From positions 248,001 to 312,000 of the forward strand of contig OX337236.1 of NCBI GenBank assembly GCA_946965045.2: a stretch of 64,000 nt of DNA, in the 5' to 3' direction. The DNA comes from Epithemia pelagica. Its lineage: Eukaryota; Protista; Bacillariophyta. Below, piece after piece: positions 8,033 through 46,825 of the stretch (its first letter is position 1; the number at the start of each line of letters is the position of its first letter). The position numbers were made by a program, and so were the translations under genes. The notes beneath the pieces are model-generated. The model was not told where the DNA came from. It saw nothing but the letters and a program-made list of their open reading frames with translations, and searched no databases.

Positions 8033-11000
8033 TTACTCAACGGCTCCTTCATTCTCCTCTATTAAGACTGGTTTTTGTGCGCTGAACGAAGTAGAATCGC
8101 GCGTCATTTCGTGGGCGCGAGTGGAAGATGGCACTCCGTCACGATTGTCCCCATGCGAGGCAGGATCTTCGTCCGCATGACCATCTCCATCCGTCCGATC
8201 CTGTCCGCACGGCGCTGAGAACACGAGCCCCAAGACGCAGGAACTGGCCAGGAGCCTCAACCACCAGCGAGACGAGGACAAGAGTCCCGATGCTGCGGAG
8301 GAAGATGACAAGACATCCAACGAAGTACCTCGTACCATGGTTGCAACGGGTCCATCTCGTTGTATGCGGTCGTTCATGGCGGTATGAACCAATCGCATTG
8401 TTATCGAGACGACAAAAGAGTTCAACAAGGCTCCGCCAATCAGGTATCCCGCGTTCCATTCCACAGAAGACTGGACGGTAAAACAATTGGCGTCACTCAA
8501 GTCCGCATCGCTTGGCCAGTAATCTTGAACAACTTCGTTGATGGTCTCGCATCGATCACCAATAATAAAGGAAGCAAAGGTTGAAATTTCGAGTAAAGAC
8601 GCCACAATGGACAAACAAAACACTTCGACAGCACTCCAGGCATTCGCGATTTCGGCTAGAAAAAGGATATCAAGCTGCCGTTTTACATTCATGGGAAACA
8701 CAAGCAAGATAAAGAGCCAGTACAGACAGGCAAAGGGTGCCACAACGGCATAAAAGAAGTATGCTGTCATCAAAATGTACGTGCCGACAGTCGAGTGACT
8801 GGACGCCGGAATTGATGTACCCAACGAGACCAACGAATAGGCGGTTCGGCGGTTCTCCTCGCCCAATGCAAGACCAGCCAGACCACCGAATTCAAATACA
8901 AAGCTCGTCTTCGTTATGCCAATGCCCAGAAGAATCGCCGCTGCCATCCATAACAGCAGGAGTAAAACCATGCAAAGTCGTGACAGCTGTCGTCTTGTTC
9001 CGTTGACATGAAACGAATGGTACAAAAGAGATTGCGGAGGTTCCGCTGTCGATGGATTCGCAGCATTTTCGTCTGTCGTTGTCGGTTCTGTTTCTGTCGT
9101 TGGAAACACACTTTCGGCCAACCGGTGGCAGTACACTGCATCATGTCCCAACCCCAGGGACAGTGTCGTGGCCAACAAAAAGCCATAAAACCCATAGTGT
9201 GGAACGACAGCAACATCTAGGCCAATCACATCGCCATCAAAGAATCGAAGGTGGTACCGAAAGGCCACCATCATCAATACTAATACGTATGTGTCCACAA
9301 GTGAAAATTTGCCAAGTGAATCCAAGGCCAGCAACAGCTGACCTCGCGGTCCATCTTGAATCTTGCGAGACACAAAGCATATCAGCATAATGACAAGTTT
9401 TGCATACGGCCAGATTCCACTGAAAACAACCACCAAAAAGAAAACCGGATAAATACCGGCATTCCACATTTCATGGGCCGTTCCAAATAAGGTGAATTCA
9501 AATAGCGACGGCAGCTCCAACGTCTTTCTTCCAATCACTGCAGTAAGTTCAACACTGGCACCCACAGACAGATTGCTACTTAGAAGAATGAATATCGTTA
9601 CAAGGATCAGCATGGGTAAGCCAATTCGTGTATGCAGAGCAATGTGTGGACTGTCCAAAAGGGCCGGCTTTGGTTTTTCCACATTGTTTGGTGTATCATT
9701 AAACGGATTGTAGGGATTGGTTCCATTCACAAGGTCGTCCCCCATGCCTGGATCGAGCAACGGCTGCGTCATTGGGTTTGCCGATTCCTCCGGGTTCGGA
9801 TCGGCTCCTCCATTCGATCCACCATGGTTGGGCAAGGCGGATTTTTCTTGGAGTAACAGGACCACAGGTTGTGCTAGAACCAGCATGGTGGCTACAATTA
9901 GAATCATTGACCACAACTCTTGGGGATCGTATAGCTCGTCGTGGTCGTCGTCGGTATTAGTATCGTCATGATGTGGGGAACCAGTTTCATGGCCCGTACA
10001 CAACTGAAACGCTTCGGAAAGAGAATAGACTGACGCCAAATTGACAAAATCGCGACCGGAATCGGCAGCCCAGCCGACCATGGCCTGGACCAAGTCTTGC
10101 ACCACCGGATAATCCAGAGTCGTCAAGGTATAGGTCATGGTCTCATTCGTGTTGGCATCCTCATTCTTGTTGTCCTGTAGTGTCACAGATGTGCTAACAT
10201 TGGCCGCAAACAATCCAATGGCAAAGCTGGCATTCTCTCCGTTCAATGACGACGACATGACGCCGGACGATACGAGGAAATCATCCACTGGAACCAAAAG
10301 GCAATGTCCATGTTCAAAGACACGGGCCAAGCCAAATGACTTGAGTTGATTCACGTTGTAGTGCAAGAGTAACCGGTCGGCCAAAGCCAGGTCATTCCAA
10401 AACAGTGTAATGTTGGCGGTGGCGGTAATGTTGGGCAAATGAAGGTCCAGCTGCAAGACCAACTGTGGTACTTGTACTGCGGCTGCTGTGGACGGTTCGT
10501 TGGTTCCATAGGACACGGCATTGGAGAGGGATAGTCCATCGTCCGTGGGTGCCAACAGATTCAGCGAGTCAATTTGTCCAATGTTCTGAAAGTACATATT
10601 GGTCACGTTTAAACGATACAGACCAGCATGCGGGTCTCTGTCACGATGAAATTCTACTGTCATCTCCTTGTCCTCTCGGACCTCGGTCTTTTCTTTGTGC
10701 CACTTGTTGTTGTTGTTGTTGTTGATGGTGTTGCCCCACCAGGACCACACGTCGTCGTCGTCATCGTCGTCGTTGTCGTCGCGTGCCAGGAGGTTCCACG
10801 ACGACGAGTGTTGATCCTCCAAGAGGGTTTGAGTGACGGAATCGGCCGTACATTGAATGTACCGATTCAAGTGGTCCAGTGTCTTGGGGTGGGACAAAAA
10901 GGTTTGCAATTGCTGAAGCGGCATGACTTTCGAAAAATTCAGCCACTGCAGAGACATGTCGTCGGATGGTGATGATGGTGGTGGAGGACACACCAGCTCC

Positions 11001-13324
11001 TCGTCGTCTCGTTGTCGTCCCACGAATGGATGCGTAGAATCATCATTATCATCATTGCAATCATAATTGGATGCATTGGTCAGGCGTCGCAAAAAGTCCT
11101 CCAACGACAAACGGACAGGTCCCTGAACCAAGCCGGCAATGGCATGAGAAATGTAGTCGGGATATCCCTGAATCAAAAGTTCCAAGGCATTGTTGAACAA
11201 GTCATCCAAATCTTGTTCCAAGACTTGAGCAGTCGTCAAGACGACTGGAGGATCGCCGTTGGTTGCCGTCGTGAGGGTGGGAACAATCCGCATCGATTCC
11301 AGGGCTGTCTGGACCGCAAGCTCGGGCGCGGTGAAGTCCAAGACCGATTCCAAGAGACACTGTAGGGAATCCATGGGAATGTCATTGTCCCACCATCCCT
11401 GGAGGACATTGAGAAGGACACCCGTCGTGACATTGGTGTGCCACAAGGACGGATCGACCCACAGTGCCAGTGTCGCATTCCAATCCAAATGACCCAACTG
11501 CAACTCGAGGGTAAATTCTTCGTGCAAGTCTTGAGGGCCGGAAAACATGCCGCCCGGAATGGACGACACATTGAGGGCGGCCTGGATCCGAATCTGGAGT
11601 GCCTGGTCGGTCTGCAACCGTGACACAAAATAGTCGTCCGCGCTCGTTTCAAAGAGTTGCAACTGGTTCCACTGATCCAAACCCGAGAGGGCAATGGTGG
11701 AAACATTTACGTGCAACGCTCCGTATCCGGGCCATAGCAGGGACAAATTGTGCAATCGATGCGGTAGAGGCATGGAATACCACAAGACTTTGTCGTCATC
11801 GTCGTCATTGTCAGGATCCTTGTCGTCGTCGTCGTCATCGTGCGCATGGACCGTGTCGAACGGCGGTTGGTCTTGCAATTCCAAGAGTGCTCGAATGACC
11901 CCATTGACCCCATGAAAAAAGAATCCACACGACCGTTGGTCGTCATTGGACGACGGTTGTTGGAGGCTGGGCAACCACGTGGGCAACAATCCATAATGCA
12001 AATGTCGTCGCACAAAGGCATTCCCAACACTGAGTGCATGGGTCAAGAGTGGAGCTTGCGTCGACCATGCCACGGCGTCCTTTCGAAACGAATCATCATC
12101 ATCAGGATCATCCTCCTGGATGATCGCGTCTGGCCTGTCCCGGAGTGGCCCTTGATCTTGTTGCTGCTGCTGCGGTTCCCTCCTACTCCACTCGTGATGC
12201 TCGGGTGGTGCATCATCATCATCATTGTCGTCGTCGTCGACCACCAAGTGTTGATTCAAAAAGTCCGTCACGGAGTGCAAGTAGGACGACACGAGAGGAT
12301 CCACCAACTCTTGGAGGGCGGGACAGACTTGCTGAGAAATTTCGTCTTGGACATAGTGTTGAATGGAATGACGGAACCAATCCACCATGTGCGCGGACAA
12401 ACTCCCGGAAAAATGCAAGGTGGGAACCACCAAGGTGGAGTGACAGGCCGTGGTTTGAACCGCGTCTGGTTGCCTCAGGCCCAGTGAATTGTGGGTCGAC
12501 GAGGAAACCTCCCACACGAGACGAATGGGATCGTGTTGGGTCGGATCGACCGGGTCATGCTTGTGATGGTGGTGATGGAACCGAGGCGCCCGAGGTTCCT
12601 CGTCGTCGTCTTCTTTTTTTTCTTTTGGGTGGTTGTGGTTGGGCGGAGGAGTCGCCAGGACGGCATGTATTTTTCCAGTAAAGCCACCCGTGGCATGATA
12701 GGAACCGGTACACGTGGCCGAGACATTGGCCACCCCCAACGCCAAGGAGGAGGAGGAGAGGGTCGTGTCATTGTGCGACGAGGCATCATCATCCTGATAA
12801 AAGGATTGGATCCGTTGCAGAGTAAAATTGGCACAGACCAAATCGTGAAGTTGGACCGTGACCATGTGCGATCGAAAGGATTGATTGGGCACGGCAATGC
12901 GCAAAAAGTACAACCAACAGGTAAAGGAATGATAGCGATGGGGAGGAGGAGGAGGATCCGTGGCAAACGTGGTGGTGGCATTGGGACCACGGCATTCGGG
13001 TGGAATCTCGCCAAGGACCGCAGAATCGGCAATCTCGTCGTAGACCACAGCATCATCAACAGCATCATCATCAGCAGCAGTATCAGGAACATTAGTATCC
13101 TCGTTCATTCTTGTTGTTGTTGTTGATGATGTTGTTTGGATGGATGGTCTCTCCTCCTTCAACGAATGGGCGTTCACCATCCCCGGCGATCCATCCTTCC
13201 AACACAACACTACCATCCATACAGCGACCCATCCACTCCTACACCAGTGTGACCACCAAGAACCCCTGTACAGTCTTGCTTCATTCCTCCTTGGTGGCAT
13301 TGTCCTTGTCGTCATGGTCGTCAT
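8033..13324 (-). CDS. Large single-exon membrane protein (about 1760 aa): signal peptide, BPI/LBP-like N-terminal region, two C-terminal PqiA (paraquat-inducible protein A) domains
   Basis: PqiA motifs FSGIWPYAKL...LGKFSLVDTYV and VAPFACL...EIANAWSAVEVFCLSI. First plausible ATG at 13324. BPI-like pattern TACHSTL...EISQQVCPAL. Confidence 0.85.
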   Translation of the reverse strand: MTTMTTRTMPPRRNEARLYRGSWWSHWCRSGWVAVWMVVLCWKDGSPGMVNAHSLKEERPSIQTTSSTTTTRMNEDTNVPDTAADDDAVDDAVVYDEIADSAVLGEIPPECRGPNATTTFATDPPPPPHRYHSFTCWLYFLRIAVPNQSFRSHMVTVQLHDLVCANFTLQRIQSFYQDDDASSHNDTTLSSSSLALGVANVSATCTGSYHATGGFTGKIHAVLATPPPNHNHPKEKKEDDDEEPRAPRFHHHHHKHDPVDPTQHDPIRLVWEVSSSTHNSLGLRQPDAVQTTACHSTLVVPTLHFSGSLSAHMVDWFRHSIQHYVQDEISQQVCPALQELVDPLVSSYLHSVTDFLNQHLVVDDDDNDDDDAPPEHHEWSRREPQQQQQDQGPLRDRPDAIIQEDDPDDDDSFRKDAVAWSTQAPLLTHALSVGNAFVRRHLHYGLLPTWLPSLQQPSSNDDQRSCGFFFHGVNGVIRALLELQDQPPFDTVHAHDDDDDDKDPDNDDDDDKVLWYSMPLPHRLHNLSLLWPGYGALHVNVSTIALSGLDQWNQLQLFETSADDYFVSRLQTDQALQIRIQAALNVSSIPGGMFSGPQDLHEEFTLELQLGHLDWNATLALWVDPSLWHTNVTTGVLLNVLQGWWDNDIPMDSLQCLLESVLDFTAPELAVQTALESMRIVPTLTTATNGDPPVVLTTAQVLEQDLDDLFNNALELLIQGYPDYISHAIAGLVQGPVRLSLEDFLRRLTNASNYDCNDDNDDSTHPFVGRQRDDEELVCPPPPSSPSDDMSLQWLNFSKVMPLQQLQTFLSHPKTLDHLNRYIQCTADSVTQTLLEDQHSSSWNLLARDDNDDDDDDDVWSWWGNTINNNNNNKWHKEKTEVREDKEMTVEFHRDRDPHAGLYRLNVTNMYFQNIGQIDSLNLLAPTDDGLSLSNAVSYGTNEPSTAAAVQVPQLVLQLDLHLPNITATANITLFWNDLALADRLLLHYNVNQLKSFGLARVFEHGHCLLVPVDDFLVSSGVMSSSLNGENASFAIGLFAANVSTSVTLQDNKNEDANTNETMTYTLTTLDYPVVQDLVQAMVGWAADSGRDFVNLASVYSLSEAFQLCTGHETGSPHHDDTNTDDDHDELYDPQELWSMILIVATMLVLAQPVVLLLQEKSALPNHGGSNGGADPNPEESANPMTQPLLDPGMGDDLVNGTNPYNPFNDTPNNVEKPKPALLDSPHIALHTRIGLPMLILVTIFILLSSNLSVGASVELTAVIGRKTLELPSLFEFTLFGTAHEMWNAGIYPVFFLVVVFSGIWPYAKLVIMLICFVSRKIQDGPRGQLLLALDSLGKFSLVDTYVLVLMMVAFRYHLRFFDGDVIGLDVAVVPHYGFYGFLLATTLSLGLGHDAVYCHRLAESVFPTTETEPTTTDENAANPSTAEPPQSLLYHSFHVNGTRRQLSRLCMVLLLLLWMAAAILLGIGITKTSFVFEFGGLAGLALGEENRRTAYSLVSLGTSIPASSHSTVGTYILMTAYFFYAVVAPFACLYWLFILLVFPMNVKRQLDILFLAEIANAWSAVEVFCLSIVASLLEISTFASFIIGDRCETINEVVQDYWPSDADLSDANCFTVQSSVEWNAGYLIGGALLNSFVVSITMRLVHTAMNDRIQRDGPVATMVRGTSLDVLSSSSAASGLLSSSRWWLRLLASSCVLGLVFSAPCGQDRTDGDGHADEDPASHGDNRDGVPSSTRAHEMTRDSTSFSAQKPVLIEENEGAVE

Positions 13325-13562
13325 GGTCGTCCTGCTTTTCGATTGGGGGCTTGAAATTTCCAATTTGGAGTGAAACTTTTGGATCCACGATTCAAACCGT
13401 CCGACGAGGAACATCCTACTTTCTGTTCCACTGTAAATCGTGAACGCTTTTCACGGGACTTGACACTGACACTAGATCTGAGTCCAGTATTTTTTGCTTC
13501 CATCGGGAGAGAGGGACGAGAGTGAACAACGGTATAGAGGCTTCGGGCAATCACCTCTTTGT

Positions 13563-13730: not shown

Positions 13731-15484
13731 GTGGACGCCAATGCGCAAAACCCCATGACGGAACCCTTGTTAGATCCGGGTATGGGAGACGACCTTGGGA
13801 AGAGCAACAATCCGTACAATCCATTTCAAGACAAATCGAGTAATGTCGAAAAACCAAAACCGGCCCTTCTGGACAGTCCACACATTCCACGCCTTGTACG
13901 AATTGGTCTTCCCATGCTCATGCTTGTCACAATTTTTGTTCTACTGATGAGTAGCAATCTATCCGTGGGTGCCAGCGTGGAACTCACGGCAGTGATTGGA
14001 AAAAAGACATTGGAGCTTCCTTCTCTTTTCGAATTCACCTTATTTGAAACGGCCCGTGAAATGTGGCATGCTGGAATTTACCCAGTCTTCTTTTTGGTGG
14101 TGGTTTTCAGTGGAATCTGGCCCTATGCCAAACTTGTCATTCTGTTGATTTGCTTTGTGTCGCGCAAGATTCAAGATGGACCACGTGGTCAATTGTTGTT
14201 GGCCATGGATTCCCTCGGAAAATTTTCCCTCGTCGACACCTGTTGATGATGGTGGCCTTTCGGTATCACCTCCGATTCTTTGATGGCGATGTGATTGGCC
14301 TAGATGTTGCCGTTGTTCCACATTTTGGTTTTTATGGCTTCTTGTTGGCCACCACACTCTCCCTGGTGTCGGGACATGCGGCCGTGTACTATCACCGCGT
14401 GGCAGAGGTTGTGTTTCCAGCGACCGAGACTACGACCGACGAAGCTCGCGTGGAGCCAACGACAACATGTCCTTCACAGTCTCTTTTGTACCATTCGTTT
14501 CATGTCAATGGTCAAAGGCGCCAGCTGTCACGTCTTTGTATGTTTGTACTGTTGCTGTTGTGGATGGGAGCGGCGATTCTCCTGGGCATTGGGATTACGA
14601 AAAAGAGCTTTGTGTTTGAATTTGGGGGCCTGGCGGGTCTTGCATTGGGTGAGGAGAATCGCCAAACTGCCTACTCGTTGGTCTCCTTGGGTACATCGAT
14701 TCCAGCGTCTAGTCACTCGACCGTCGGCACGTACATTTGGATGGCGGCCTACTTTTTTTGCGCGGTCGTGGCACCCTTTGCCTGTCTCTATTGGCTGTTT
14801 ATCTTGTTGGTATTTCCCATGACGGTCCAACGTCAGCTCGTGGTTTTGTTTCTGGCCGAAATTGCCAATGCCTGGAGTGCCGTGGAAGTCTTTTGTTTGT
14901 CGATTGTGGCCTCCTTGCTGGAAATCTCGGCCTTTGCGTCCTTTATCATTGGTGACCGTTGCGAAACGATGAACGAGATTGTTCAAGATTACTGGCCCAG
15001 CGATACGGACTTGAGTGATGCCAACTGCTTTACCGTCAAGTCCTCTGTGGACTGGAACGCGGGCTACTTGATTGGAGGAGCCTTGTCGAACTCCTTTGTC
15101 GTTTCGATTACGATGCGATTGGTCCATGCCGCCATGAACGATCGCATACAACAAGATGGGACAGTGGTTTCGACCATGGCACGAGGTACCTCCTTGGATG
15201 TCTTGTCGTCTTCCTCGTCGAATGCCTCTGGACCCTCGTCCTCGTCCCGGTGGTGGCGTTTCTGTACCCGTCCCTGTGTGTTGGGGCTCTTGTTCGCAGC
15301 ATCGAGCCCATCGTTAGCTAGACAGGACCGGTCGGATGGACATGGTCGTTCGGTGGACGAAGAGGAACCCGGATCAAATGGAGACAATCGTGATGGAGTA
15401 CCAAGTTCCTTTCGTTCTCCCGAAAGGAGGGTCGATTCCACTACAGATCCACAACCAGAGGAACATGGAGGAACCTCGGAATAA
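13731..15484 (+). pseudogene. Inverted, 5'-truncated duplicate of the PqiA region of the 8033-13324 gene, frameshifted
   Basis: High peptide similarity to the C-terminal third of the parent. Net 10-nt deletion at about 14241 (DTYVLVLMM becomes DTC-stop). Homology continues into the 3' flank. Confidence 0.9.
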
Positions 15485-37258: not shown

Positions 37259-38263
37259 ATGAGTTCTGCAGCTCGGAGAACAGAAGAAAGCGAAACAACT
37301 GCTGAACAACTGGATCGTTTAAAAACAGTTGTCGAGGCACAACGCAAAGAATTGCACTGCGCTTTAGGAGGAGTGGATATCGCGCAAACAGAGCTGGATA
37401 AGACTCGCGTGTTGCACGCCCAGGAGCGTCAACATTTGGAAGACGTGCATGGCGGAATACTTGCATCCAAAGAGGCGTCGGTGATTCAGACGCAGAAAAA
37501 CGTGCGCGAGTTGGTGGGCGACCATCAAGCGGAGATCGATCGACTGGTGACCCGTGTGTGTGAAACTTTTGCGGAGGAAGGAGGAGACGGGGAAGACTTC
37601 GTGGAAACGGTGTTTCGAAGAGCATCTCCAAGCAACAAGAAGGTCGTGGTGGCTCTAGAGCTGTTGTTTCCGCACCCGGAAGACCAAGAAGTCGTTTTCC
37701 ACCAGATTTGTGGATTGGCCTTGGCTGGCGGACGGGAGAGGCCTTCTGCAGAGGAGGTTGTGGAACGAAAAGTGGCCGTTGTTCGTGAGTTGTTCACGCA
37801 GAACTCTGCCCGCCGTGGATTGCCTGTGCCAGTTCCCGGAGGGAGAGCCGCGACGGCTGCTGCAGCATCCGACCGAAAAGATAAGAAACCCGAGGCGGGT
37901 AAAAAGAGGTCCGAAGGGAAAGGAACTGGTGAAGCGTTTTCGAAGCGCGAGAAGCGTTCTTTGGAAGAGTGGTTGGGCCAACCGGGTTTCAGTACCCTAC
38001 CCAAGAAGCAGCGCAAGAGCAGTGCCCCTGTGAAGAGGAGCGCGAGTGTTTCGCCCAAGGAGAAAGGCCTGGGGTCGATCAAGGAAACTCCCACAAGGGA
38101 GAAATCGATTAAGGAAACTCCGACGAGGGAGAATACGGCGACGAGGGAAAACACGGCAACAGAGGACGAGCCGTTGTCGTGGAAGAAACATTTACCGGAA
38201 GTGGTTGTCCTGTCTGGCGATTCTTCGGGACGCGCGTCGAAGTCGGAATCAGACAGTGAGTGA
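37259..38263 (+). CDS. Antisense cargo ORF1 of the YR element (334 aa, coiled-coil N-terminus, basic/acidic low-complexity tail)
   Basis: ATG-initiated, heptad-like EQLDRLKTVVEAQRKELH, short internal repeats SIKETPTRE x2 and TATRE; does not overlap the YR, RT or gag ORFs. Confidence 0.7.
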   Translation: MSSAARRTEESETTAEQLDRLKTVVEAQRKELHCALGGVDIAQTELDKTRVLHAQERQHLEDVHGGILASKEASVIQTQKNVRELVGDHQAEIDRLVTRVCETFAEEGGDGEDFVETVFRRASPSNKKVVVALELLFPHPEDQEVVFHQICGLALAGGRERPSAEEVVERKVAVVRELFTQNSARRGLPVPVPGGRAATAAAASDRKDKKPEAGKKRSEGKGTGEAFSKREKRSLEEWLGQPGFSTLPKKQRKSSAPVKRSASVSPKEKGLGSIKETPTREKSIKETPTRENTATRENTATEDEPLSWKKHLPEVVVLSGDSSGRASKSESDSE

Positions 38264-38265
38264 AG

Positions 38266-38856
38266 ATGGAGGAGATGGCCGAGTTGATTGACGAGCTGGA
38301 TCAGATGGCGGATAGGCAGGCTCAAATGGCCGAGATTATGAGAGAGTTGGGACGGATGGCCGAGAGGCAAGTGGAGATCTCTAGTCGATTGCTTGAATTG
38401 AAGGAATTGGCGGAGAGGAGAGTGGAGCAGGCGATTCATGTGGTGGCGGCAGCGAACGCGGCTGTGGCCAACGGAGGAGGAGGGGGGGAGTGGGAGCCCG
38501 ATGGAGTGGGCCCTACGGGCAGAGAAGGAATGCGAGAGGGGACACCACGGGGCCGAGAGGAAGGGTCGACGGCCCGTGGAGGAAGATGGGGCTGGCGAGT
38601 GGCAAGCAAAGGGGTGGGTGGACCGAGTCCCCGTGGACGTACGAGTCCACGAACACAAGGTGGATTTATGGGTCGGCGGGCGAGCCGTGGATCGGAGGAG
38701 CGTTTCAAAGTTGGTGAGCGGGTTCGGATTCGAAACCCAAACGATCCCGCTGACCCAACTGGGCGGGTGGTGAAGGTAACAGACGCACGTATCCACGTGG
38801 AGACCGACAATGGCGTGCGTTATTCTCGAGCGGACAAGAACATAGCGAGGATTTAA
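38266..38856 (+). CDS. Antisense cargo ORF2 of the YR element (196 aa, coiled coil, G/R-rich linker, KOW/SH3-like C-terminal barrel)
   Basis: MEEMAELIDELDQMADRQ heptads; C-terminus FKVGERVRIRNP...TGRVVKVTDARIHVETDNG; ATG 2 nt after the ORF1 stop. Confidence 0.72.
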   Translation: MEEMAELIDELDQMADRQAQMAEIMRELGRMAERQVEISSRLLELKELAERRVEQAIHVVAAANAAVANGGGGGEWEPDGVGPTGREGMREGTPRGREEGSTARGGRWGWRVASKGVGGPSPRGRTSPRTQGGFMGRRASRGSEERFKVGERVRIRNPNDPADPTGRVVKVTDARIHVETDNGVRYSRADKNIARI

Positions 38857-38924
38857 GGTTGGAGCGGACGAAATAGTGATACCATAACAGAATAGTGAGA
38901 TACATTAGATGTGAATAGTGGTAG

Positions 38925-40337
38925 TTAAATATTTAGGACGCCTGCAATGGCCGCTTGACTATGAGGACCAATTGCTTTCGAGCAGTCACGGAGGTAGTGT
39001 TTGATCGAGTCTTCTTGCCATCGGAGTCGGAAGGCAATTTGGGGGAGGGGAACTTGAACGTTCCACAACGCTACAGCGGCTGTGACGCGTGTAGAATGGG
39101 CGACGAGCAAGTGGGCGTGACGCCGGTGGTAGTTGTGAGGGTTTGGGTACGCCTCCAGGCAAGCTTGACGGAGGGCTGTGATGATATCGGCCGACCTAAG
39201 GTAGGCTATTTTTCCCGGTTTGACCTGATAGGAGGCGAGGGGCAGGTGGGCTCCGATTTGGAGGGAGAGGGAGCGGCGGGCAATTGAACAGGATGCGAGC
39301 ACGGGACAGAGATAAGAGTGGCCGGAACGACGGAAGATGCGTTTCGTGAAATTATGAGCGCTTTTGTCATGCCGAAAGCGGATCTGGACTGCCGAGACGG
39401 TGTGTTCGTGTTTGGGGAGGGAAGCAAGTGGAAGCATGTCGTTCGCTTGAGTCAAGAAGACGAAGTCGCTGGAGACAAAGGCAATAGGTCGATCGTTCCA
39501 GGATGGATCATTAGGACAATTGGGAACGGCCGCGAAGACAAACTTTGAGCCAGAGGTTTGGGCAAATTCACTGGCACGGGAGCCGGTAAAGAGGCCAAGC
39601 CGGACCCAGTCGAAGAGAGTTGCGTCAAGTGACGAAGGAGGGGCCCCGACTGCACGGCAATAGAGCACGCTAAGGATGGCATCGGTGATGGGTTCCTTAC
39701 GATCGCGTGGACGTTGCCAGCGACGATGAAATTGTAATGGGTCGGATAGCAGTGGGTGCAGCAGGGTTGAGTTGGTTGGGTTGGAGATGTTAACAGGGCG
39801 GTTGAGGGCAACCTGAAGTGCGGAATGGGCAGCCGTTACGTAAGATTGAATGGTATCTGCTGCTAGGTCGGACCTCCTGTAGTAGTTCTCGCCGTTTGTG
39901 ACGTGATGTAGGTAAAGGTGTAGGATGTGTATGCATTCGTTATCGGTCAGGCGAGATAAAAGTTCGGGGGTGAGGTGATTGCGAGCGGACCATCGGGAAA
40001 AGTGAGCGCCTCGAGAGTCCAAAGTTCGATCATTCTTGTTCCTAGTTCGTCCTCGGTCCTGTTGAATTTGAAGCTTGTTAATATCATTGATAGCAACTTG
40101 GAGGGCACGCGGTAGGCGGTGGATGGGTCCAGCACTGGCTTGGACTGCTCGATAACGGAGGCCCAAGTGGGCGCAAGGGACGGGCGGGACAACAGGTCGG
40201 CATTGTGATTGAGCTCGCCCGCAATATGCGAGGCCTGTAATTGAACGGGAATAGGGGCAGAAGTGAGCATGGCTTGAAAAAGACGAGCAAGACGACGAGT
40301 TGCGGGCCGCTTGGCACGGGCGGCATGGGAGAGCCAC
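38925..40337 (-). CDS. Tyrosine recombinase of the retrotransposon
   Basis: Catalytic set looks intact: GSRASEF (R), RHDK (K), LCPV, HSTR (H-x-x-R), RW, HYLR (Y); overlaps the RNase H 3' end. Confidence 0.93.
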   Translation of the reverse strand: MALPCRPCQAARNSSSCSSFSSHAHFCPYSRSITGLAYCGRAQSQCRPVVPPVPCAHLGLRYRAVQASAGPIHRLPRALQVAINDINKLQIQQDRGRTRNKNDRTLDSRGAHFSRWSARNHLTPELLSRLTDNECIHILHLYLHHVTNGENYYRRSDLAADTIQSYVTAAHSALQVALNRPVNISNPTNSTLLHPLLSDPLQFHRRWQRPRDRKEPITDAILSVLYCRAVGAPPSSLDATLFDWVRLGLFTGSRASEFAQTSGSKFVFAAVPNCPNDPSWNDRPIAFVSSDFVFLTQANDMLPLASLPKHEHTVSAVQIRFRHDKSAHNFTKRIFRRSGHSYLCPVLASCSIARRSLSLQIGAHLPLASYQVKPGKIAYLRSADIITALRQACLEAYPNPHNYHRRHAHLLVAHSTRVTAAVALWNVQVPLPQIAFRLRWQEDSIKHYLRDCSKAIGPHSQAAIAGVLNI

Positions 40338-42799
40338 GAGAGCGCCGACGTGTTGTCGGTGCGCATGGAGATGACAAGGGTTTGGGGTTGCGGTGTAGCG
40401 TGAGAAGCCAGTCGCTGCAAGAACCAGAAGTTTATGAGAAGGACGACGAATTCAAGCAAGTTGATGTGCCACAGTGCATCGGGCGTGTCTTGAGTTGGAT
40501 CGGATAATTTGGTGGACTGCATATCTTTTGGTAGGATGAAGCCCAGGCGAAGTAAGTCGGGTTTGGTTAGTCTCCACATGAAGGGGTAGTGGGTGGATAA
40601 CCAGCCTCCCAGCCCTTCAATGGAAGCGTCGCCCAAAATTTCAAATTGCGAAACCCGCGGGATGCATAAAGCAATGGGACGGGTCCAAATGTGGGTCCGA
40701 GAAGAATGGAGGGTGGCCAAGAGCGTTCGGAGGTCCATAACGGTTTCTCGGTTGAGGGTGAACCGGGTTTTGTGCCAAAAGGAGGCGGCACGGGTGGATT
40801 TGCCTGCTGCTGCGGTGGCACGGAGGCGGTCGTTGAGTGCATACTGGAGGGACAACGTGTAATAGATGCCCAAGAGTGAGACTGGGGCGCTGTGACGGAC
40901 GAGGCCCAGAATTGTGGCCGCCATTTGCGGTGAAAGCCGACGCCCGTCGGAGTGCGTGGTGGGAAGGTCGAGGGCGTGTTGAAGATAGACCTGTAGTTGT
41001 GTCTGTTTATGGGACGGCCAGGAAATTGTCATAGTTCGAGTGTTGATGATATACCCCAGGAATTTCAGGCTGTGACTGATGTCACGCACAAATTTTATTG
41101 GATTAATAGGATCGGGTCGATGGGGGTCTTCGTCGGGGAAGCCGAAGGTGACGTATGCGGCGAGAATACTGCTATTGACTAACCGGTGGATCTCCGAGCG
41201 GATGGCCGCTCCACCGGTGTCGTCAACGAACGGAGCATACACCGGACGAGGGAAGGAGGACGGTTGGGATGCTAACAAGTGGGAGGTGCCTTGATTTAGA
41301 GCGTCGGGAGTGGCGGGCGTTAAGGTTCTGAGGGTGCGGGGGGACGGAGGAGGTGGGATAGCAATGGTGTCCGCCAAAAGAGTACGAGCGGAAGTGAGCT
41401 CAGCAAGGTAACGAGAGAGATGGGCTCGTAGCTCCCCCGGTAGCATGTAGTAGGAAGGACTGTTTTTGGCGCCAAAAATCATTCCAACGGGTATGATGAG
41501 GAACCAGCCGAGGACGCTTGCAAATGCTAAGGCAGCGTTGGGGTTGTATGTGACCCGACGGAAGGCGGCACTGATATCATCGGCGCTGAGCAGTATGTCT
41601 TCCGAGGGATGGTCAATACGCAGATTGTAGATGTACCGCAAAAAGCGTAGGAAAGCCGTGCCGTAAGCCACCGCGGGGTTACAGTCATCGTCACGTCCAG
41701 CATCAGGAATTTGGGCATTGGTGTTGCCGTCATCAGTGTCTGTGATTTTGGAGCTTGGATCGATGCACAAGCGGCCGGTGTCGCCGATGCGGTGGGGTTT
41801 GGGCGCTACCCAGTTAATGAGTGAAAGGAAAAGACCGGGGAGGAACCGCCAGATAATGCGGGGAAGGAAAAGATGATACTGTAGCTGTTCCTCTTTCTTG
41901 AACTTTTTGGTGATTTCCTCTAAGTTTTCTTGGACCCCGGGGTAGTTGTCAAGGAGGTTGCGTTGGGAAACGGCAACACGACTACAGGAATAGTGGCCTG
42001 CGAGAGGGGCGCCCAGGTGAAAAAGTTGCCAAGTGCGGGCATAGTCCAACCGTGGATAGTCCGGTGGGGGCTCAAAAGCTTTGACTCGGTCGATGATGTC
42101 AAAGGTGTCTGCCAGGCGTCTGTGATGATTATTGTAGATTCCGCCAAGCCAGCGGTACATGTCCGCATAGACGAAGTTTGCGCGACAAAGGGCAACGGCA
42201 AGCAGAAAAGCCTTACGGAATGGAAGGGGTTGGGATTTGTCTTCGCAGGGGGGCATGCGACAGACAGCGAGAGAGGTGCCATGAGCAGCGGCAACGCGGA
42301 GACGATGATAGAAGTGGAAGCTTGGCGAGGAGGCGACTAGGTTTTGTTGGTCCTGTGGGGACAAAAAATCCCATGCGTAGTGGCCGAGCAATTCAGGGGA
42401 AACAACATGGGGTGCGGTTGCCGCAAGGGGAGTGCCGTCAGGAGCAGCATGGGATGTGCCGACGTTGAGACGGTCGGGACCGAAACCAATTCGTTTGCGA
42501 TGGTGTGTGAACGACCAGAGAGGGAACAGGGGAAGAATTCCCCAGTTGGGCACCAAGGAGGAAGAGGCAAGGAGGAGTTGGGAGCGATCGGCGTCGGTCA
42601 AAAAGGGGTTGACGGTGGTTAACACCGTGTGCAACGTTGGCAACGCATAGGAGACCCGAGAGGGGGCAGCACGTGGGTGAGAAGGAAATACTGGTAGTTT
42701 GGGGACAGTAGGGACAGCCTCAGTAGTGGGAGCGGGAAGGGAGAGGAGAAGATCTGCCGTAGAGGTGGGATAAAATGTCTCGGGTGAAGTGGGAGGCAT
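39947..42799 (-). CDS. Reverse transcriptase / RNase H of the YR retrotransposon (950 aa)
   Basis: DDISAAF, FGAKNSP, FVDD, FLGYII, GDASIEGLGG, HINLLE, TDNTSA, HIAGELNHNADLLSR. Confidence 0.95.
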   Translation of the reverse strand: MPPTSPETFYPTSTADLLLSLPAPTTEAVPTVPKLPVFPSHPRAAPSRVSYALPTLHTVLTTVNPFLTDADRSQLLLASSSLVPNWGILPLFPLWSFTHHRKRIGFGPDRLNVGTSHAAPDGTPLAATAPHVVSPELLGHYAWDFLSPQDQQNLVASSPSFHFYHRLRVAAAHGTSLAVCRMPPCEDKSQPLPFRKAFLLAVALCRANFVYADMYRWLGGIYNNHHRRLADTFDIIDRVKAFEPPPDYPRLDYARTWQLFHLGAPLAGHYSCSRVAVSQRNLLDNYPGVQENLEEITKKFKKEEQLQYHLFLPRIIWRFLPGLFLSLINWVAPKPHRIGDTGRLCIDPSSKITDTDDGNTNAQIPDAGRDDDCNPAVAYGTAFLRFLRYIYNLRIDHPSEDILLSADDISAAFRRVTYNPNAALAFASVLGWFLIIPVGMIFGAKNSPSYYMLPGELRAHLSRYLAELTSARTLLADTIAIPPPPSPRTLRTLTPATPDALNQGTSHLLASQPSSFPRPVYAPFVDDTGGAAIRSEIHRLVNSSILAAYVTFGFPDEDPHRPDPINPIKFVRDISHSLKFLGYIINTRTMTISWPSHKQTQLQVYLQHALDLPTTHSDGRRLSPQMAATILGLVRHSAPVSLLGIYYTLSLQYALNDRLRATAAAGKSTRAASFWHKTRFTLNRETVMDLRTLLATLHSSRTHIWTRPIALCIPRVSQFEILGDASIEGLGGWLSTHYPFMWRLTKPDLLRLGFILPKDMQSTKLSDPTQDTPDALWHINLLEFVVLLINFWFLQRLASHATPQPQTLVISMRTDNTSALSWLSHAARAKRPATRRLARLFQAMLTSAPIPVQLQASHIAGELNHNADLLSRPSLAPTWASVIEQSKPVLDPSTAYRVPSKLLSMILTSFKFNRTEDELGTRMIELWTLEALTFPDGPLAITSPPNFYLA

Positions 42800-42979
42800 T
42801 TCATCAGACCACGGCGAACGGGCGCAAGTCGAACCTGGGCGATGATGTGCCGGTAGTCACGATGAGGGCGGGGGTTGTTGGGGGGCGTTTGGACGGTTCG
42901 GACGGTCTGAAGCCATGTGGGCTGTAAATTCCGGTGTAGGTTGGAGAAGGTGTCGAACGCGATCATGGTGACAGAACTC

Positions 42980-45900
42980 TCAGAGCGGTTTAAGGGAGGA
43001 TTGGGGCCAGTTGGAGATAGCCTGGGGAGAAAGGCAGACGTGGTGTCGATTGCATTGCAACGGTTGGCCTTCCGAGTTTGTGCGTGAACGATGGGGACCG
43101 GTGCACCCGACAACAGAGTTTTTGTCGATGTACATAAAGCAATATTGCTTTTGGTCGAAACGGGGAATGGTGAGGGAAGACGCGAGGTCGGCAAGGAGCT
43201 TACCTGAGTGGGTATAACGTTCTTTCCCTGCCGCGGTGAGGGTGACAAGCGGGACGAGAGCTTTTTGGCCAGGGCGACGTTGGGGTTGAGCGGAGTCAGA
43301 ACGAGCACGCTTGGGCGGTGGTTGGTCGGCAGCACGGTCAGGAGGACGGTCCGAGGGGGAGCGACGCCGTTGGGCACGATCGTAGCGTTCAAGAGGAGAA
43401 CGAGAGTCACCCCGGTGATCAGGACGAGATGGTAGGAGATAGTTGGGGGTGGAGCGGCAAAACAAGGGTGACATGGAGTTGGTGTGTTGGTGGGAGAGTA
43501 TTGTAGGAGCCGTAAATAAAAGGGTAAAGGTGGATCTCCAATCCAAACAGTAGGTGAGATTTGAGTCGGTTGAGTGCGGGCTCACATCGTAGATGAGAGT
43601 GCACTGGGGAACAAAGCCTTCAGGGTCTGCGGTGGCGGGGCAAGCTATTTTGGTACGATTCTGGGCGCCCCAGCGGAGGAATTGTTGAAACAGGTCACAG
43701 GTGTGATGGAGAAGGGCCTGAGATAGTTGTAGCGTGTGACTGGGTTGCGAGGAAGCCAATGTCAACCATGCATCTCGAGTTTGAGCTTGATCAAACTGAT
43801 GAGCTGCCCAAAGCAATTGACCGGCAAGGGGACCGCGGAGAAGAAAGGGGCTAAAACCTGGAGGGAATTGGGGGAAGGAGTCGTCGTTGGTGAGTACTGT
43901 GTTTAAGAAAAACACAATATGATGGAAGAACAGCTTAAACTGGGTGCAGGAGAGACCTTGTTGCGGGAGGCGACCCTCTGGGGACAAGGGGATGGACCAG
44001 AGGAAGTGCCAAGGAGTGAGGGATAGATATAATGACTTAGGGTCGTCGAGATGAAGAGTCTGACCTGCGTTGATACGGAATGTTCTCAGTGCTTTACGCG
44101 GGGCTTCTGCGTGAAGGAAAGACTGAGAAAAATCGACGCGGAACGGAGCCACCGGGTATTTGGAAGCTTCAATGGCGGCGGCGAGGAGGTCAATGGCCGC
44201 TACCTCGGCGGCAGAGCTGCGATGATCAGCGCCTGCGTAGGGCAGAACTTGGCGCAGCCAATCGTTGTTGAGATGGCTGGGGGTATGGAGAAGCTCGTGG
44301 GAATAGGAGGGACGTCTCGTGGTTGTGGGCAAGTTGGGGTCAACCAAACGTAGATCAGTAGGTAGAGCAACGATGCCCAGGAAGGCCCATTGGACTACAT
44401 GAGGTGGGAGTTGGTCGGTGTCTTGGAAAATAAAGCGGTCAAAAGTAAATTGACCGCGCTCTTCCATGGTGCGTCGGATGAGGGGAAGATACGCGGAGGA
44501 AGCCAAGGTGGAATGCACATATTTGAGCCGTGTGCTCGTAAACCAAGTTGGGTTGTCAACCGGGAGATACCAGGGTGAGGTAGTGGTGGAAACCAGGGGT
44601 GCGTCCCAGGCCTGACGTTGGTGCGCCAAGGGGTTGAAGGATTGGGAGTGGTAGGACTCCATGGCTGGAGAGGCTGGGTGATAATGAGTGGGTCGACGTG
44701 GTGGGTTGTGGGGTGCATGAGGAGAGGCGTTGGAGTAGGCATTGGCTGTAGAGGTGGAAGGAGACCGCTGGAGGCGGGGGGGAGGAAGGGGGGGGAGGAA
44801 ATGCTCCTGTCGCGAGGGAGGACGAGGCGGAAGTTGCTGAATGGGGTTTTGGGTGGGAAACGGCGGTGGGTCCGGACCGACGAGGAGACGATTTTGATGG
44901 GGTTGAGGTGGCGGCTGCTGTGGTTCCAGCTGCTGAGGGGTTGGAGGAGCACGCTGTTGTGGTTCCATCTGCTGGGGTTGCAGAGGAGCACGAGAGACAG
45001 GGACTGGGGCAGGAAACCGTGGCGAGGGGTCCAGGGCTGCTGGTGATGGAATGCGAGCCGTTGGAGGGTGAAAGGCTGTAGGACGACGAGGGAGGCTTTC
45101 TGCGGGAGGTTCCAGAGGGAATGGTCGAACTTCCGGTGTCTGGGGAGAGGAAGGAGGGTTTTTTTGCGAGGGTTTGTCCGGGGAATCGACATTCAAACGG
45201 GTAACCGTGTTGGGTTGGGGTGGGTTGAGGGACGAAGATGGTGACCGATCGTGTGGGGTGGATATGACGCGTTGAGCGAGATGATCGTTTGGGAGGTGAT
45301 TCAAAAATTCCGGAAGGTATTTTTGGACATCAAAGGAAGAAAAGGATTTGAAACCGTAGGAGGTGGACCACGACTGTGTTTGAGGGCGAAAGAGGAAAGG
45401 AACGTATGTGTGGGTGTTGTCCACGTGAGGGATGTTTTGAGGGAGGAACAGGTCGACGTCTTGGGAGGATAGCATGTTTGCTTTCTCCCGAAAGAAAGTG
45501 AAGAATTTGGTTCGCATGGTATGGGACGGATTGTTTTGGAGGAGTGCATCGGAGAAAAGCTTGGTTGTAAGGGAGAAGAAAGGATGCACAAACAGGGCTT
45601 CATAAGGGTGGATACGAGCCGGATAAGAACGGGGAAGGTTGGTAGAGATGGGGACGTTCTTGAGGGTGGTGAGGTCGGCTGCTATCTGCTTGGAAGTGTG
45701 CCAAACGGTAGCAAAGTCGTCGGCGCGTTGACTCACGGTGAGGAGCCAATCGTTGACAAAAGGGACGTCAAGCCAAGAGAGAGTTGTTGCCAAGTCTTTG
45801 AGATGGGAAGAACGAGTGGCTGGCATCGGGTTGTAGGTTTGATTCCAACCAAGAATAGCGTTAATTAAACTGGCGGAGTCAGGAATGGAGGCAGGATCGA

Positions 45901-46825
45901 AAAGGAGACCAATAGGAAGATGATGATGACGAGGAAGGGGAAGGGCGGAAAGAGCAATCCAGGAGCCCTCGATAGGAGAAGTGTTCTCAACTTGAATTGT
46001 GAGAATGGGTTCGTCGACGCGATGGAGGCGCGAGAAAATTTGATGGGCATGTGGGGGGGAGTCTTGGGAGGGGATCCAAAGAGAATGCCACGGGTCGTCA
46101 GGCGAGTGGAGGCGTGACGTAGACTGTTCAAGGATAACAGTGGAAAATAGGGCTCGGTGAGCACGGAGGGAGGCCAGTATGGAACTGGGGTGGGAAGTAA
46201 TCCACGAGTAGGGGTTAAGTTGTGAAATGGATTGGGGACGGATGCCCGATTGGAAAGCGAACGCAGGGGCAATTAACGTTGTAGGAAAACGAAACTGCGA
46301 GGAGCTGATTTTCTGGGGGGTATCGGAAAATACATGTGCTTGCAAGCCTTTTCCGTTGAAGGCAAACGCCGTGGGCCCGAGGACAACCAGGTAAGGGCCG
46401 GACGGGGGTGGGATTTTGGAGGAAAGCTTGCTGGGATCGGTGGTGGGAGCCGAGTCAAGCTGGACAACGGCTAGGAAGCCGGCAATAGTAGGTGAGTCTG
46501 CAGCCAGGGTATACTTGGCAGGGGAAGTGACTACGGTAGCGTCGGGAGAGGAATTATTTGGCCCAAAATTCAGGGAAAGAAGATTGGCCAAAAATTCCTT
46601 CTGGATTTCCTTGGATTTTTCTTCAGGGGACAAGAAAATAAAGTCTTTAGAGTTTTGGAGATCGGTAGGGTGAAGAGGAGACATGCCGGAGAACTGATTT
46701 GGATAGGTTGTGGTGGATGCCACAGGCTTGAACAAACCAGAAGGGGAGAACGAAAGGAACGACTGGGTCGTATCGGGAGAGATTAATCCGCGAAGGGTAG
46801 GATTAATAGCGAAAGATAACGACAT
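42980..46825 (-). CDS. Gag-like ORF1 of the YR retrotransposon (about 1280 aa)
   Basis: Uninterrupted ORF, P/Q-rich centre, C-terminal Cys/His cluster CFMY...CTGPH...CNRHHVC; first ATG outside repeat A at 46825. Confidence 0.85.
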   Translation of the reverse strand: MSLSFAINPTLRGLISPDTTQSFLSFSPSGLFKPVASTTTYPNQFSGMSPLHPTDLQNSKDFIFLSPEEKSKEIQKEFLANLLSLNFGPNNSSPDATVVTSPAKYTLAADSPTIAGFLAVVQLDSAPTTDPSKLSSKIPPPSGPYLVVLGPTAFAFNGKGLQAHVFSDTPQKISSSQFRFPTTLIAPAFAFQSGIRPQSISQLNPYSWITSHPSSILASLRAHRALFSTVILEQSTSRLHSPDDPWHSLWIPSQDSPPHAHQIFSRLHRVDEPILTIQVENTSPIEGSWIALSALPLPRHHHLPIGLLFDPASIPDSASLINAILGWNQTYNPMPATRSSHLKDLATTLSWLDVPFVNDWLLTVSQRADDFATVWHTSKQIAADLTTLKNVPISTNLPRSYPARIHPYEALFVHPFFSLTTKLFSDALLQNNPSHTMRTKFFTFFREKANMLSSQDVDLFLPQNIPHVDNTHTYVPFLFRPQTQSWSTSYGFKSFSSFDVQKYLPEFLNHLPNDHLAQRVISTPHDRSPSSSLNPPQPNTVTRLNVDSPDKPSQKNPPSSPQTPEVRPFPLEPPAESLPRRPTAFHPPTARIPSPAALDPSPRFPAPVPVSRAPLQPQQMEPQQRAPPTPQQLEPQQPPPQPHQNRLLVGPDPPPFPTQNPIQQLPPRPPSRQEHFLPPLPPPRLQRSPSTSTANAYSNASPHAPHNPPRRPTHYHPASPAMESYHSQSFNPLAHQRQAWDAPLVSTTTSPWYLPVDNPTWFTSTRLKYVHSTLASSAYLPLIRRTMEERGQFTFDRFIFQDTDQLPPHVVQWAFLGIVALPTDLRLVDPNLPTTTRRPSYSHELLHTPSHLNNDWLRQVLPYAGADHRSSAAEVAAIDLLAAAIEASKYPVAPFRVDFSQSFLHAEAPRKALRTFRINAGQTLHLDDPKSLYLSLTPWHFLWSIPLSPEGRLPQQGLSCTQFKLFFHHIVFFLNTVLTNDDSFPQFPPGFSPFLLRGPLAGQLLWAAHQFDQAQTRDAWLTLASSQPSHTLQLSQALLHHTCDLFQQFLRWGAQNRTKIACPATADPEGFVPQCTLIYDVSPHSTDSNLTYCLDWRSTFTLLFTAPTILSHQHTNSMSPLFCRSTPNYLLPSRPDHRGDSRSPLERYDRAQRRRSPSDRPPDRAADQPPPKRARSDSAQPQRRPGQKALVPLVTLTAAGKERYTHSGKLLADLASSLTIPRFDQKQYCFMYIDKNSVVGCTGPHRSRTNSEGQPLQCNRHHVCLSPQAISNWPQSSLKPL

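Follow-up and report, generated by a model that had tools for sequence, protein, structure and literature searches.

The reverse strand of a 64,000-nucleotide (nt) stretch of the diatom Epithemia pelagica (GenBank assembly GCA_946965045.2, contig OX337236.1, positions 248,001 to 312,000), hereafter the window, carries a gene at positions 8033-13414 whose product appears to join a lipid-binding region of the BPI/LBP type to two PqiA domains. The locus raises the question whether a single eukaryotic polypeptide may serve as a lipid-transport system, as was proposed in an earlier description made from the letters alone (the sequence-only reading). We consider it likely, with a probability of roughly 0.8, that the gene encodes a diatom TUPAL, i.e., an extracytoplasmic TULIP-like arm which is fused via a transmembrane (TM) anchor to a double four-TM module of the PqiA/LetA type. 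As in other proteins of this class, PqiA and TULIP-like domains occur in one polypeptide, and the TULIP side is predicted to be extracytoplasmic on the basis of the signal peptide, the glycosylation sequons and the number of TM helices. The fusion class has been known since 2017 and was named TUPAL in 2026; the diatom gene adds a member to it, not a class. All positions refer to the window, and the features of the locus are compiled in Table 1.

Gene Structure and PqiA Part

The frame, which is free of stop codons over 5.4 kb, is the only long open reading frame (ORF) in this region; the others that overlap it are short and either out of frame or on the complementary strand. The sequence-only reading had described a single ORF of about 1760 amino acids (aa), and one uninterrupted ORF is indeed present; the start assumed there, at 13324, corresponds to Met31 (1763 aa), and the first ATG gives 1793 aa. 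Met1, Met31, and Met39 are start candidates.

Both PqiA units that had been claimed from the sequence were recovered with the Pfam family PF04403. Scanned alone, the two halves reach 31.6 bits (E 1.8e-7) and 26.7 bits (E 5.8e-6) and thus exceed the cut-off of 23.8 bits, and the whole protein is matched in two stretches with an E-value of 8.7e-12. The hydropathy profile shows a strong, isolated TM helix at aa 1170-1188 and, downstream of it, helices clustered in two groups (aa 1264-1430 and 1480-1676). Similarly, the proposed signal peptide, with its hydrophobic core at aa 61-72, and a large luminal region of about 1030 aa in front of the TM helix were found.

Within aa 80-1165, 18 of the 22 N-glycosylation sequons are situated alongside a series of conserved cysteines, and both features fit a luminal or extracellular arm. 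Furthermore, the order of signal peptide, arm, TM helix, linker of about 70 aa, and PqiA places the arm on the extracytoplasmic face, as is the case for the TM-anchored LetB/PqiB proteins in bacteria. The signal peptide and the sequons, together with the odd TM anchor, lead us to infer that the termini of the PqiA part are cytosolic and the arm is extracytoplasmic.

Neither of the cytosolic linkers (aa 1189-1263 and 1430-1478) contains a cysteine. Since these linkers precede each PqiA module, the zinc ribbons (CxxC) of bacterial LetA are absent here, a lack which sets the eukaryotic LetA-like subgroup apart and is compatible with homology to LetA. No match to the MCE domain (MlaD, PF02470) was obtained in the 60.5-Mb assembly, while control genomes gave matches. 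The proposal that a TULIP-type part takes the place of the MCE ring agrees with this, and by analogy the arm appears to be positioned like the bacterial MCE proteins. A complex prediction for module 3 of the arm with the TM anchor and PqiA scored 0.00, left the alignments unused, and speaks neither for nor against docking.

Module 1 and Its Relation to BPI

The sequence-only reading had pointed to a two-cysteine spacing of the BPI/LBP type at about 12280-12870, and the peptide quoted there corresponds to aa 322-371 (approximately 12302-12451). This claim was borne out by the family profile. Built from 80 members, it matches human BPI (1bp1) with an E-value of 1.4e-5 over BPI residues 129-193 and LBP with an E-value of 0.0066. 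C324 and C364, which are at least 90% conserved in the 80 sequences, align to the cysteines of the BPI disulfide C135/C175, so that the bond which connects the sheet to the long helix in BPI is predicted to be kept in module 1.

The Pfam family LBP_BPI_CETP (PF01273) weakly matches the complete protein, with an E-value of 0.17, and the isolated segment aa 185-384, with an E-value of 0.011. Among the relatives, two distant ones exceed the cut-off of 28.8 bits (P0126 with 30.0 bits, P0132 with 33.1 bits), others reach 22-27 bits, and P0003, which is 26% identical, is matched at the aligned position with an E-value of 1.4e-5. As relatives pass the Pfam cut-off and the family profile matches 1bp1, the BPI homology of module 1 is supported by transitivity. 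A structural alignment of Der f 7 with module 1 by VIA-align (Z 8.1, root-mean-square deviation (rmsd) 3.0, 130 aligned residues) is in good agreement with this. Taken together, the assignment of module 1 as a BPI-type TULIP barrel is well supported. The conserved N-terminal motif at aa 138-184 lies outside the folded model, which covers aa 185-1165, and judged by its sequence it probably forms the short first helix of this module.

Modules 2 and 3

The check proposed in the sequence-only reading, an AlphaFold model with a Foldseek comparison, was run on aa 185-1165. Based on the alignment of 80 sequences, AlphaFold2 (AF2) modeled this 981-residue arm with a mean per-residue confidence (pLDDT) of 82 and a predicted template-modeling score (pTM) of 0.79. 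The model consists of three modules, each with a multi-stranded sheet followed by a long helix; its low-complexity runs, rich in acidic residues, His, or Asn, show no order. The top 35 rows of the Foldseek search of the PDB are nearly all TULIP proteins (CETP, LBP, BPI, JHBP, Takeout, Der f 7/Der p 7, and SPLUNC1), with E-values of 6.6e-4 for CETP and 7e-4 for LBP. When these matches were aligned by VIA-align, LBP (Z 11.0, 260 aligned residues, model residues 1-597) and BPI (Z 10.5) spanned modules 1 and 2, i.e., the alignments extend into module 2 up to model residues 526-597. A fold search independent of Foldseek ranked Der f 7, BPI, and YceB first (Z 7.2-7.7).

Modules 2 and 3 are paralogues according to hhalign (95.9%, E 5.4e-9, 181 columns); their relation to module 1 is undetectable by sequence. 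Module 2 is single-copy in the genome. In the features of a protein language model, aa 440-1165 fall to Grp7_allergen, JHBP, and LBP_BPI_CETP clusters at 0.82-0.87, a weak lead. Among 77 module 2 sequences, Pfam identified no family, JHBP alone recurring in 4 of them with an E-value of 0.026 or weaker. The C-terminal BPI family PF02886 was never matched in Pfam scans of 13 relatives, and module 2 is thus not assignable to it. When the whole protein, its PqiA part, and each of modules 2 and 3 were used as queries against PDB sequences, nothing or just low-complexity noise was returned, and LetA was not matched either. The suggestion that the later beta-rich blocks are further tubular repeats stands in part. 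Two mutually homologous modules of sheet and long helix are present in the model; as TULIP tubes they are unproven, the fold evidence being weak. We nevertheless regard both as probable TULIP-like barrels.

Homologues and Conservation of Module Order

As the word-index protein search returned few relatives, i.e., the protein itself and two others only, an exhaustive profile search was required. Using the luminal region, it yielded 205 cluster representatives with an E-value of at most 0.001, 81 of them at 1e-30 or below. The C-terminal PqiA region is present in most of the long representatives among the 205, and more than 40 long homologues have the same architecture. Named members from diatoms are CAB9516048.1 of Seminavis robusta, which is annotated just as "Paraquat-inducible protein A", and GKY94027.1 of Mayamaea pseudoterrestris. 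In the diatom subfamily the order of module 1, module 2, module 3, TM helix, and PqiA is conserved.

The distant relatives were scored with two to at least five TULIP-like modules. In case of Balamuthia mandrillaris (P0126, KAL6068024.1), one module 1 and four module 2 units are located in front of PqiA, and in the metagenomic proteins P0135 and P0146 (1598-2268 aa) the unit of module 1 and module 2 is repeated.

N-Terminus and Targeting

The database gene model (P0001) comprises 1691 aa, starts at Met103, and lacks the signal-peptide-like stretch (13106-13414 on the reverse strand) that is seen in homologues. In full-length homologues, classical N-terminal signal peptides are situated at the matching place, upstream of the PPxC...CWL motif, and the start of P0001 is probably mis-annotated.

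In diatoms, plastid import is marked by an aromatic residue just after the cleavage site of the signal peptide. No aromatic residue follows the predicted cleavage site in the diatom protein or in the presequences of its homologues, which contain a signal peptide only, and plastid targeting was rejected as unsupported. The location in the endoplasmic reticulum or the complex-plastid membranes that the sequence-only reading had assumed is not supported: a plastid-type presequence is lacking, and the only studied member of the class resides in a lysosome-like vacuole. A bacterial contaminant was rejected as well: the gene is located beside retrotransposons in a eukaryotic assembly of 60.5 Mb and 23 contigs, and its named homologues are of diatom or amoebal origin.

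Weighing of Alternative Explanations

Several results weigh against a TULIP-like arm fused to PqiA. The score of LBP_BPI_CETP for this protein alone (12.0-15.9 bits) is sub-threshold, and the best Z-scores for TULIP proteins in the Foldseek-independent search (7.6-7.7) are middling by the notes of the tool itself. Module 3 folded alone by AF2 (pLDDT 86.7) has Der f 7, Takeout, and SPLUNC1 as its top Foldseek matches, but with non-significant E-values of 0.06-0.17; by VIA-align its best Z-score of 6.3 is to unrelated sheet-plus-helix proteins, and CETP and BPI reach 5.1-5.2 with an rmsd of 7 over 133-142 residues. A shape search of the ESM atlas with module 3 gave TM-scores below 0.5 throughout, to beta-barrel fragments. 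Finally, among the sequencing runs checked, no RNA run contains the gene stretch.

The last point, together with the deviating start of the database model at Met103, would agree with an artefact of annotation or assembly, in which two adjacent genes were taken for one ORF or the gene is dead. This has next to no probability, considering that the long frame lacks any stop codon, that the order of parts recurs in dozens of homologues from independent assemblies, including those of S. robusta and M. pseudoterrestris, that the stretch is present in four sequencing runs, and that the ratio of non-synonymous to synonymous substitution rates (Ka/Ks) against the paralogue described below is 0.14. The luminal region might instead be a structural, adhesive, or cell-surface domain which merely resembles TULIP proteins, while PqiA functions by itself or pairs with a different partner. 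It would fit this explanation that modules 2 and 3 match no lipid-binding family significantly, be it in sequence or in fold, and that the arm contains long acidic low-complexity inserts; the purifying selection on a PqiA-only paralogue indicates that an armless PqiA is viable. However, module 1 is a BPI homologue by sequence with its disulfide cysteines kept, the leads for modules 2 and 3, weak as they are, all indicate TULIP families (Grp7_allergen, JHBP, and LBP_BPI_CETP clusters in language-model features; JHBP in Pfam; Der f 7, Takeout, and SPLUNC1 as leading Foldseek matches), and the fusion with PqiA recurs across eukaryotes. We therefore regard a non-carrier arm as very improbable.

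A variant of the favoured reading, the one nearest to the proposal of the sequence-only reading, concerns the mode of transport. The three-barrel arm might be a fixed conduit across the luminal gap between two membranes, e.g., chloroplast endoplasmic reticulum and periplastidial membrane, and thus a true analogue of the LetB/PqiB tunnel instead of a shuttle or scavenger. The pTM of the arm model suggests a fixed arrangement of modules, the number of modules varies in distant relatives such as that of Balamuthia in the manner of the bacterial MCE rings, and the authors of the work on PfTUPA, the member from Plasmodium falciparum, left this mode open. On the other hand, neither the diatom protein nor its homologues show a plastid-type presequence, a distal membrane-binding element was not identified, and the only localised member is situated in the digestive vacuole, facing the lumen. 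A bridge of this kind appears unlikely. The TUPAL reading is thus preferred, and the steps proposed for it follow from analogy to LetAB and PfTUPA. Acting as a shuttle or a bridge, the arm would take up or deliver lipids at the luminal or extracellular face and would fill the role of the separate bacterial MCE protein (PqiB/LetB). It may exchange lipids with the cleft of the PqiA pseudodimer, and the latter would insert them into the host membrane or extract them from it. Candidate compartments are the plasma membrane and the secretory or endolysosomal system.

PqiA-Only Copies and Neighbourhood

Upstream of the main gene, separated from its start by about 340-430 bp, lies an inverted partial duplicate of the PqiA part (Table 1). 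A genome-wide PqiA search gave a fourth match at 14744-14953 on the forward strand, which is part of this duplicate. Its nucleotide identity to the main gene is 82% over 1582 nt, and a Met near 13755 is the predicted start of the PqiA-only protein. From 13945 to the stop at 15484 all insertions and deletions are multiples of three, except for a deletion of 10 nt near 14240. The comparison with the main gene over 567 codons gave a Ka/Ks of 0.14 at a Ks of 0.75, and the duplicate has thus been maintained as a coding gene. Owing to the 10-nt deletion, it is frameshifted in this assembly as well as in contigs from runs X1, X3, and X4; in a contig of run X2, which derives from a different sample, the ten extra letters are present and the frame is open across the site. 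Since X2 has the 10 nt and X1, X3, and X4 are without, a null allele of the PqiA-only copy appears to segregate. At the orthologous locus of a species with a 47% identical protein, no such duplicate occurs within 7 kb.

It is tempting to speculate that the TULIP barrels form a rigid chain, with the module number determining its length as the number of MCE rings does for the bacterial tunnel, that this chain bridges a defined luminal or extracellular gap, and that the selected PqiA-only copy with its segregating null allele hints at a division of labour between two genes; we consider this combination unlikely.

A third PqiA gene without a BPI-like arm was found on contig C8 (L001, G000:C8:1499045-1502248; ORF 142-2862 on the reverse strand, 906 aa, Pfam PqiA 36 bits). 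Its N-terminus is long and of low complexity, its two halves are separated by a long insert, and it may represent the other stramenopile PqiA type of the TUPAL preprint (see below).

Elsewhere in the window, the stretch 38000-46000 shows a strong positive GC skew of 0.28-0.44 and a raised G+C content of about 0.55, unlike the rest of the window.

Table 1. Features of the fusion gene and of its inverted partial duplicate (window positions; residues in the numbering of the 1793-aa product).
Feature	Position	Strand	Residues (aa)	Remarks
Whole ORF	8033..13414	(-)	1793 aa from first ATG	Intron not required
Probable signal peptide	13169..13300	(-)	39-82	12-residue hydrophobic core (aa 61-72) after Arg-rich residues
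N-terminal motif PPxC ... CWL ... P[ND]QSF	12863..13003	(-)	138-184	Conserved Cys pair C141, C166; seen in homologue N-termini
Module 1	12215..12862	(-)	185-400	BPI/LBP/CETP N-terminal-like TULIP barrel; disordered acidic/His insert; strands and 40-residue helix in AF2
Segment matching end of LBP_BPI_CETP profile	12293..12463	(-)	318-374	C324, C364 align to BPI C135, C175
Helical linker 1	11870..12097	(-)	440-515	Disordered acidic runs on either side; nearly invariant C496 in CGFFF motif
Module 2	11069..11782	(-)	545-782	Curved beta-sheet and two long helices, TULIP-like topology in AF2
Helical linker 2	10799..10933	(-)	828-872	AF2
Module 3	9989..10627	(-)	930-1142	Duplicate of module 2; beta-sheet and 37-residue helix; membrane-proximal
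Single TM anchor	9851..9907	(-)	1170-1188	Hydropathy 2.64; between luminal arm and cytosolic linker of about 70 aa
PqiA/LetA-like module 1	9125..9640	(-)	1259-1430	4 TM; PF04403 and hydropathy
PqiA/LetA-like module 2	8375..8983	(-)	1478-1680	4 TM; PF04403; conserved luminal Cys pair C1622/C1644
C-terminal tail	8036..8374	(-)	1681-1793	Poorly conserved, presumably cytosolic
Inverted partial duplicate	13748..15484	(+)	matches 1212 to stop	PqiA part only, no TULIP arm; head-to-head with main gene

Comparison with Known Systems

Diatoms are genetically tractable and important for lipid biology. As the arm is single-copy in addition, the gene offers a practical target for studies of TUPAL function outside parasites. 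In TUPALs, the LetA/PqiA lipid transporter of bacteria is employed anew, its MCE tunnel being replaced by a TULIP arm. The sequence-only reading had presented the one-protein system as a new candidate, but the same fusion and the same functional proposal were already published (PMC5507252; PMC13017536; bioRxiv 10.64898/2026.09.11.750981), and the idea is thus a correct rediscovery of what appeared in 2017 and 2026. It opens no new question: first printed in 2017, it was put to the test in Plasmodium in 2026. What the diatom locus adds is modest, namely an arm of three modules and a PqiA-only neighbour that is polymorphic.

Wong and Levine described in 2017 a few protist and amoebal CETP/BPI proteins that are anchored by a C-terminal PqiA, and suggested that both parts may handle the same lipid (PMC5507252). 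The order of parts, extracellular CETP/BPI domains followed by PqiA, is the same as in the diatom protein; theirs is a bioinformatic note of one paragraph in which anchoring in the plasma membrane was assumed, modules were not analysed, and the diatom subfamily was not described. The LetA study of 2026 reported eukaryotic LetA-like proteins without zinc-ribbon domains, fused to an extracytoplasmic domain that resembles lipid-transport proteins, and suggested it as a replacement for MCE tunnels (PMC13017536). The preprint of September 2026 introduced the name TUPALs and, in a survey of eukaryotes that found the class mostly in SAR, described N-terminal types with one and two BPI copies (bioRxiv 10.64898/2026.09.11.750981). 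Its founding member PfTUPA, the sole one studied and localised, is essential for clearing membranes from the lysosome-like digestive vacuole, where it faces the lumen (same preprint).

The diatom protein shares with TUPALs the PqiA double four-TM module and lumen-facing TULIP/BPI-like domains in one chain, and the same lipid hand-over between arm and membrane is proposed. In PfTUPA, by contrast, PqiA is followed on its C-terminal side by one divergent "ApiTULIP" domain, whereas the arm of the diatom protein is N-terminal, has its own TM anchor, and comprises three modules. The preprint treats one or two BPI-like copies and does not mention diatoms, and the diatom protein does not belong to its separate stramenopile type with an extended PqiA beta-sheet. 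The three-module arm of the diatom subfamily and the variable number of modules in its relatives are found in none of the texts of PMC5507252, PMC13017536, and the TUPAL preprint.

With LetAB and PqiABC of E. coli (PMC13017536) the diatom protein has in common two tandem tetraspanin-like four-TM modules and, by prediction, the cytoplasmic ends and an extracytoplasmic lipid-carrying partner on one TM helix. It differs by the lack of zinc ribbons and of an outer-membrane lipoprotein partner, and the place of a separate hexameric MCE tunnel is taken by a TULIP-like partner in the same chain. With human BPI, LBP, and CETP (PDB 1bp1, 4m4d, and 2obd), module 1 shares the fold of the N-terminal barrel, a significant profile match, and the predicted equivalent of the C135-C175 disulfide, and modules 1 and 2 align over both BPI barrels (Z 10.5-11), although module 2 has no match to the C-terminal BPI domain of Pfam. 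The human proteins are soluble, secreted, and two-barreled, and to this plan the diatom protein adds a probable third barrel, helical linkers, acidic inserts, and a membrane transporter.

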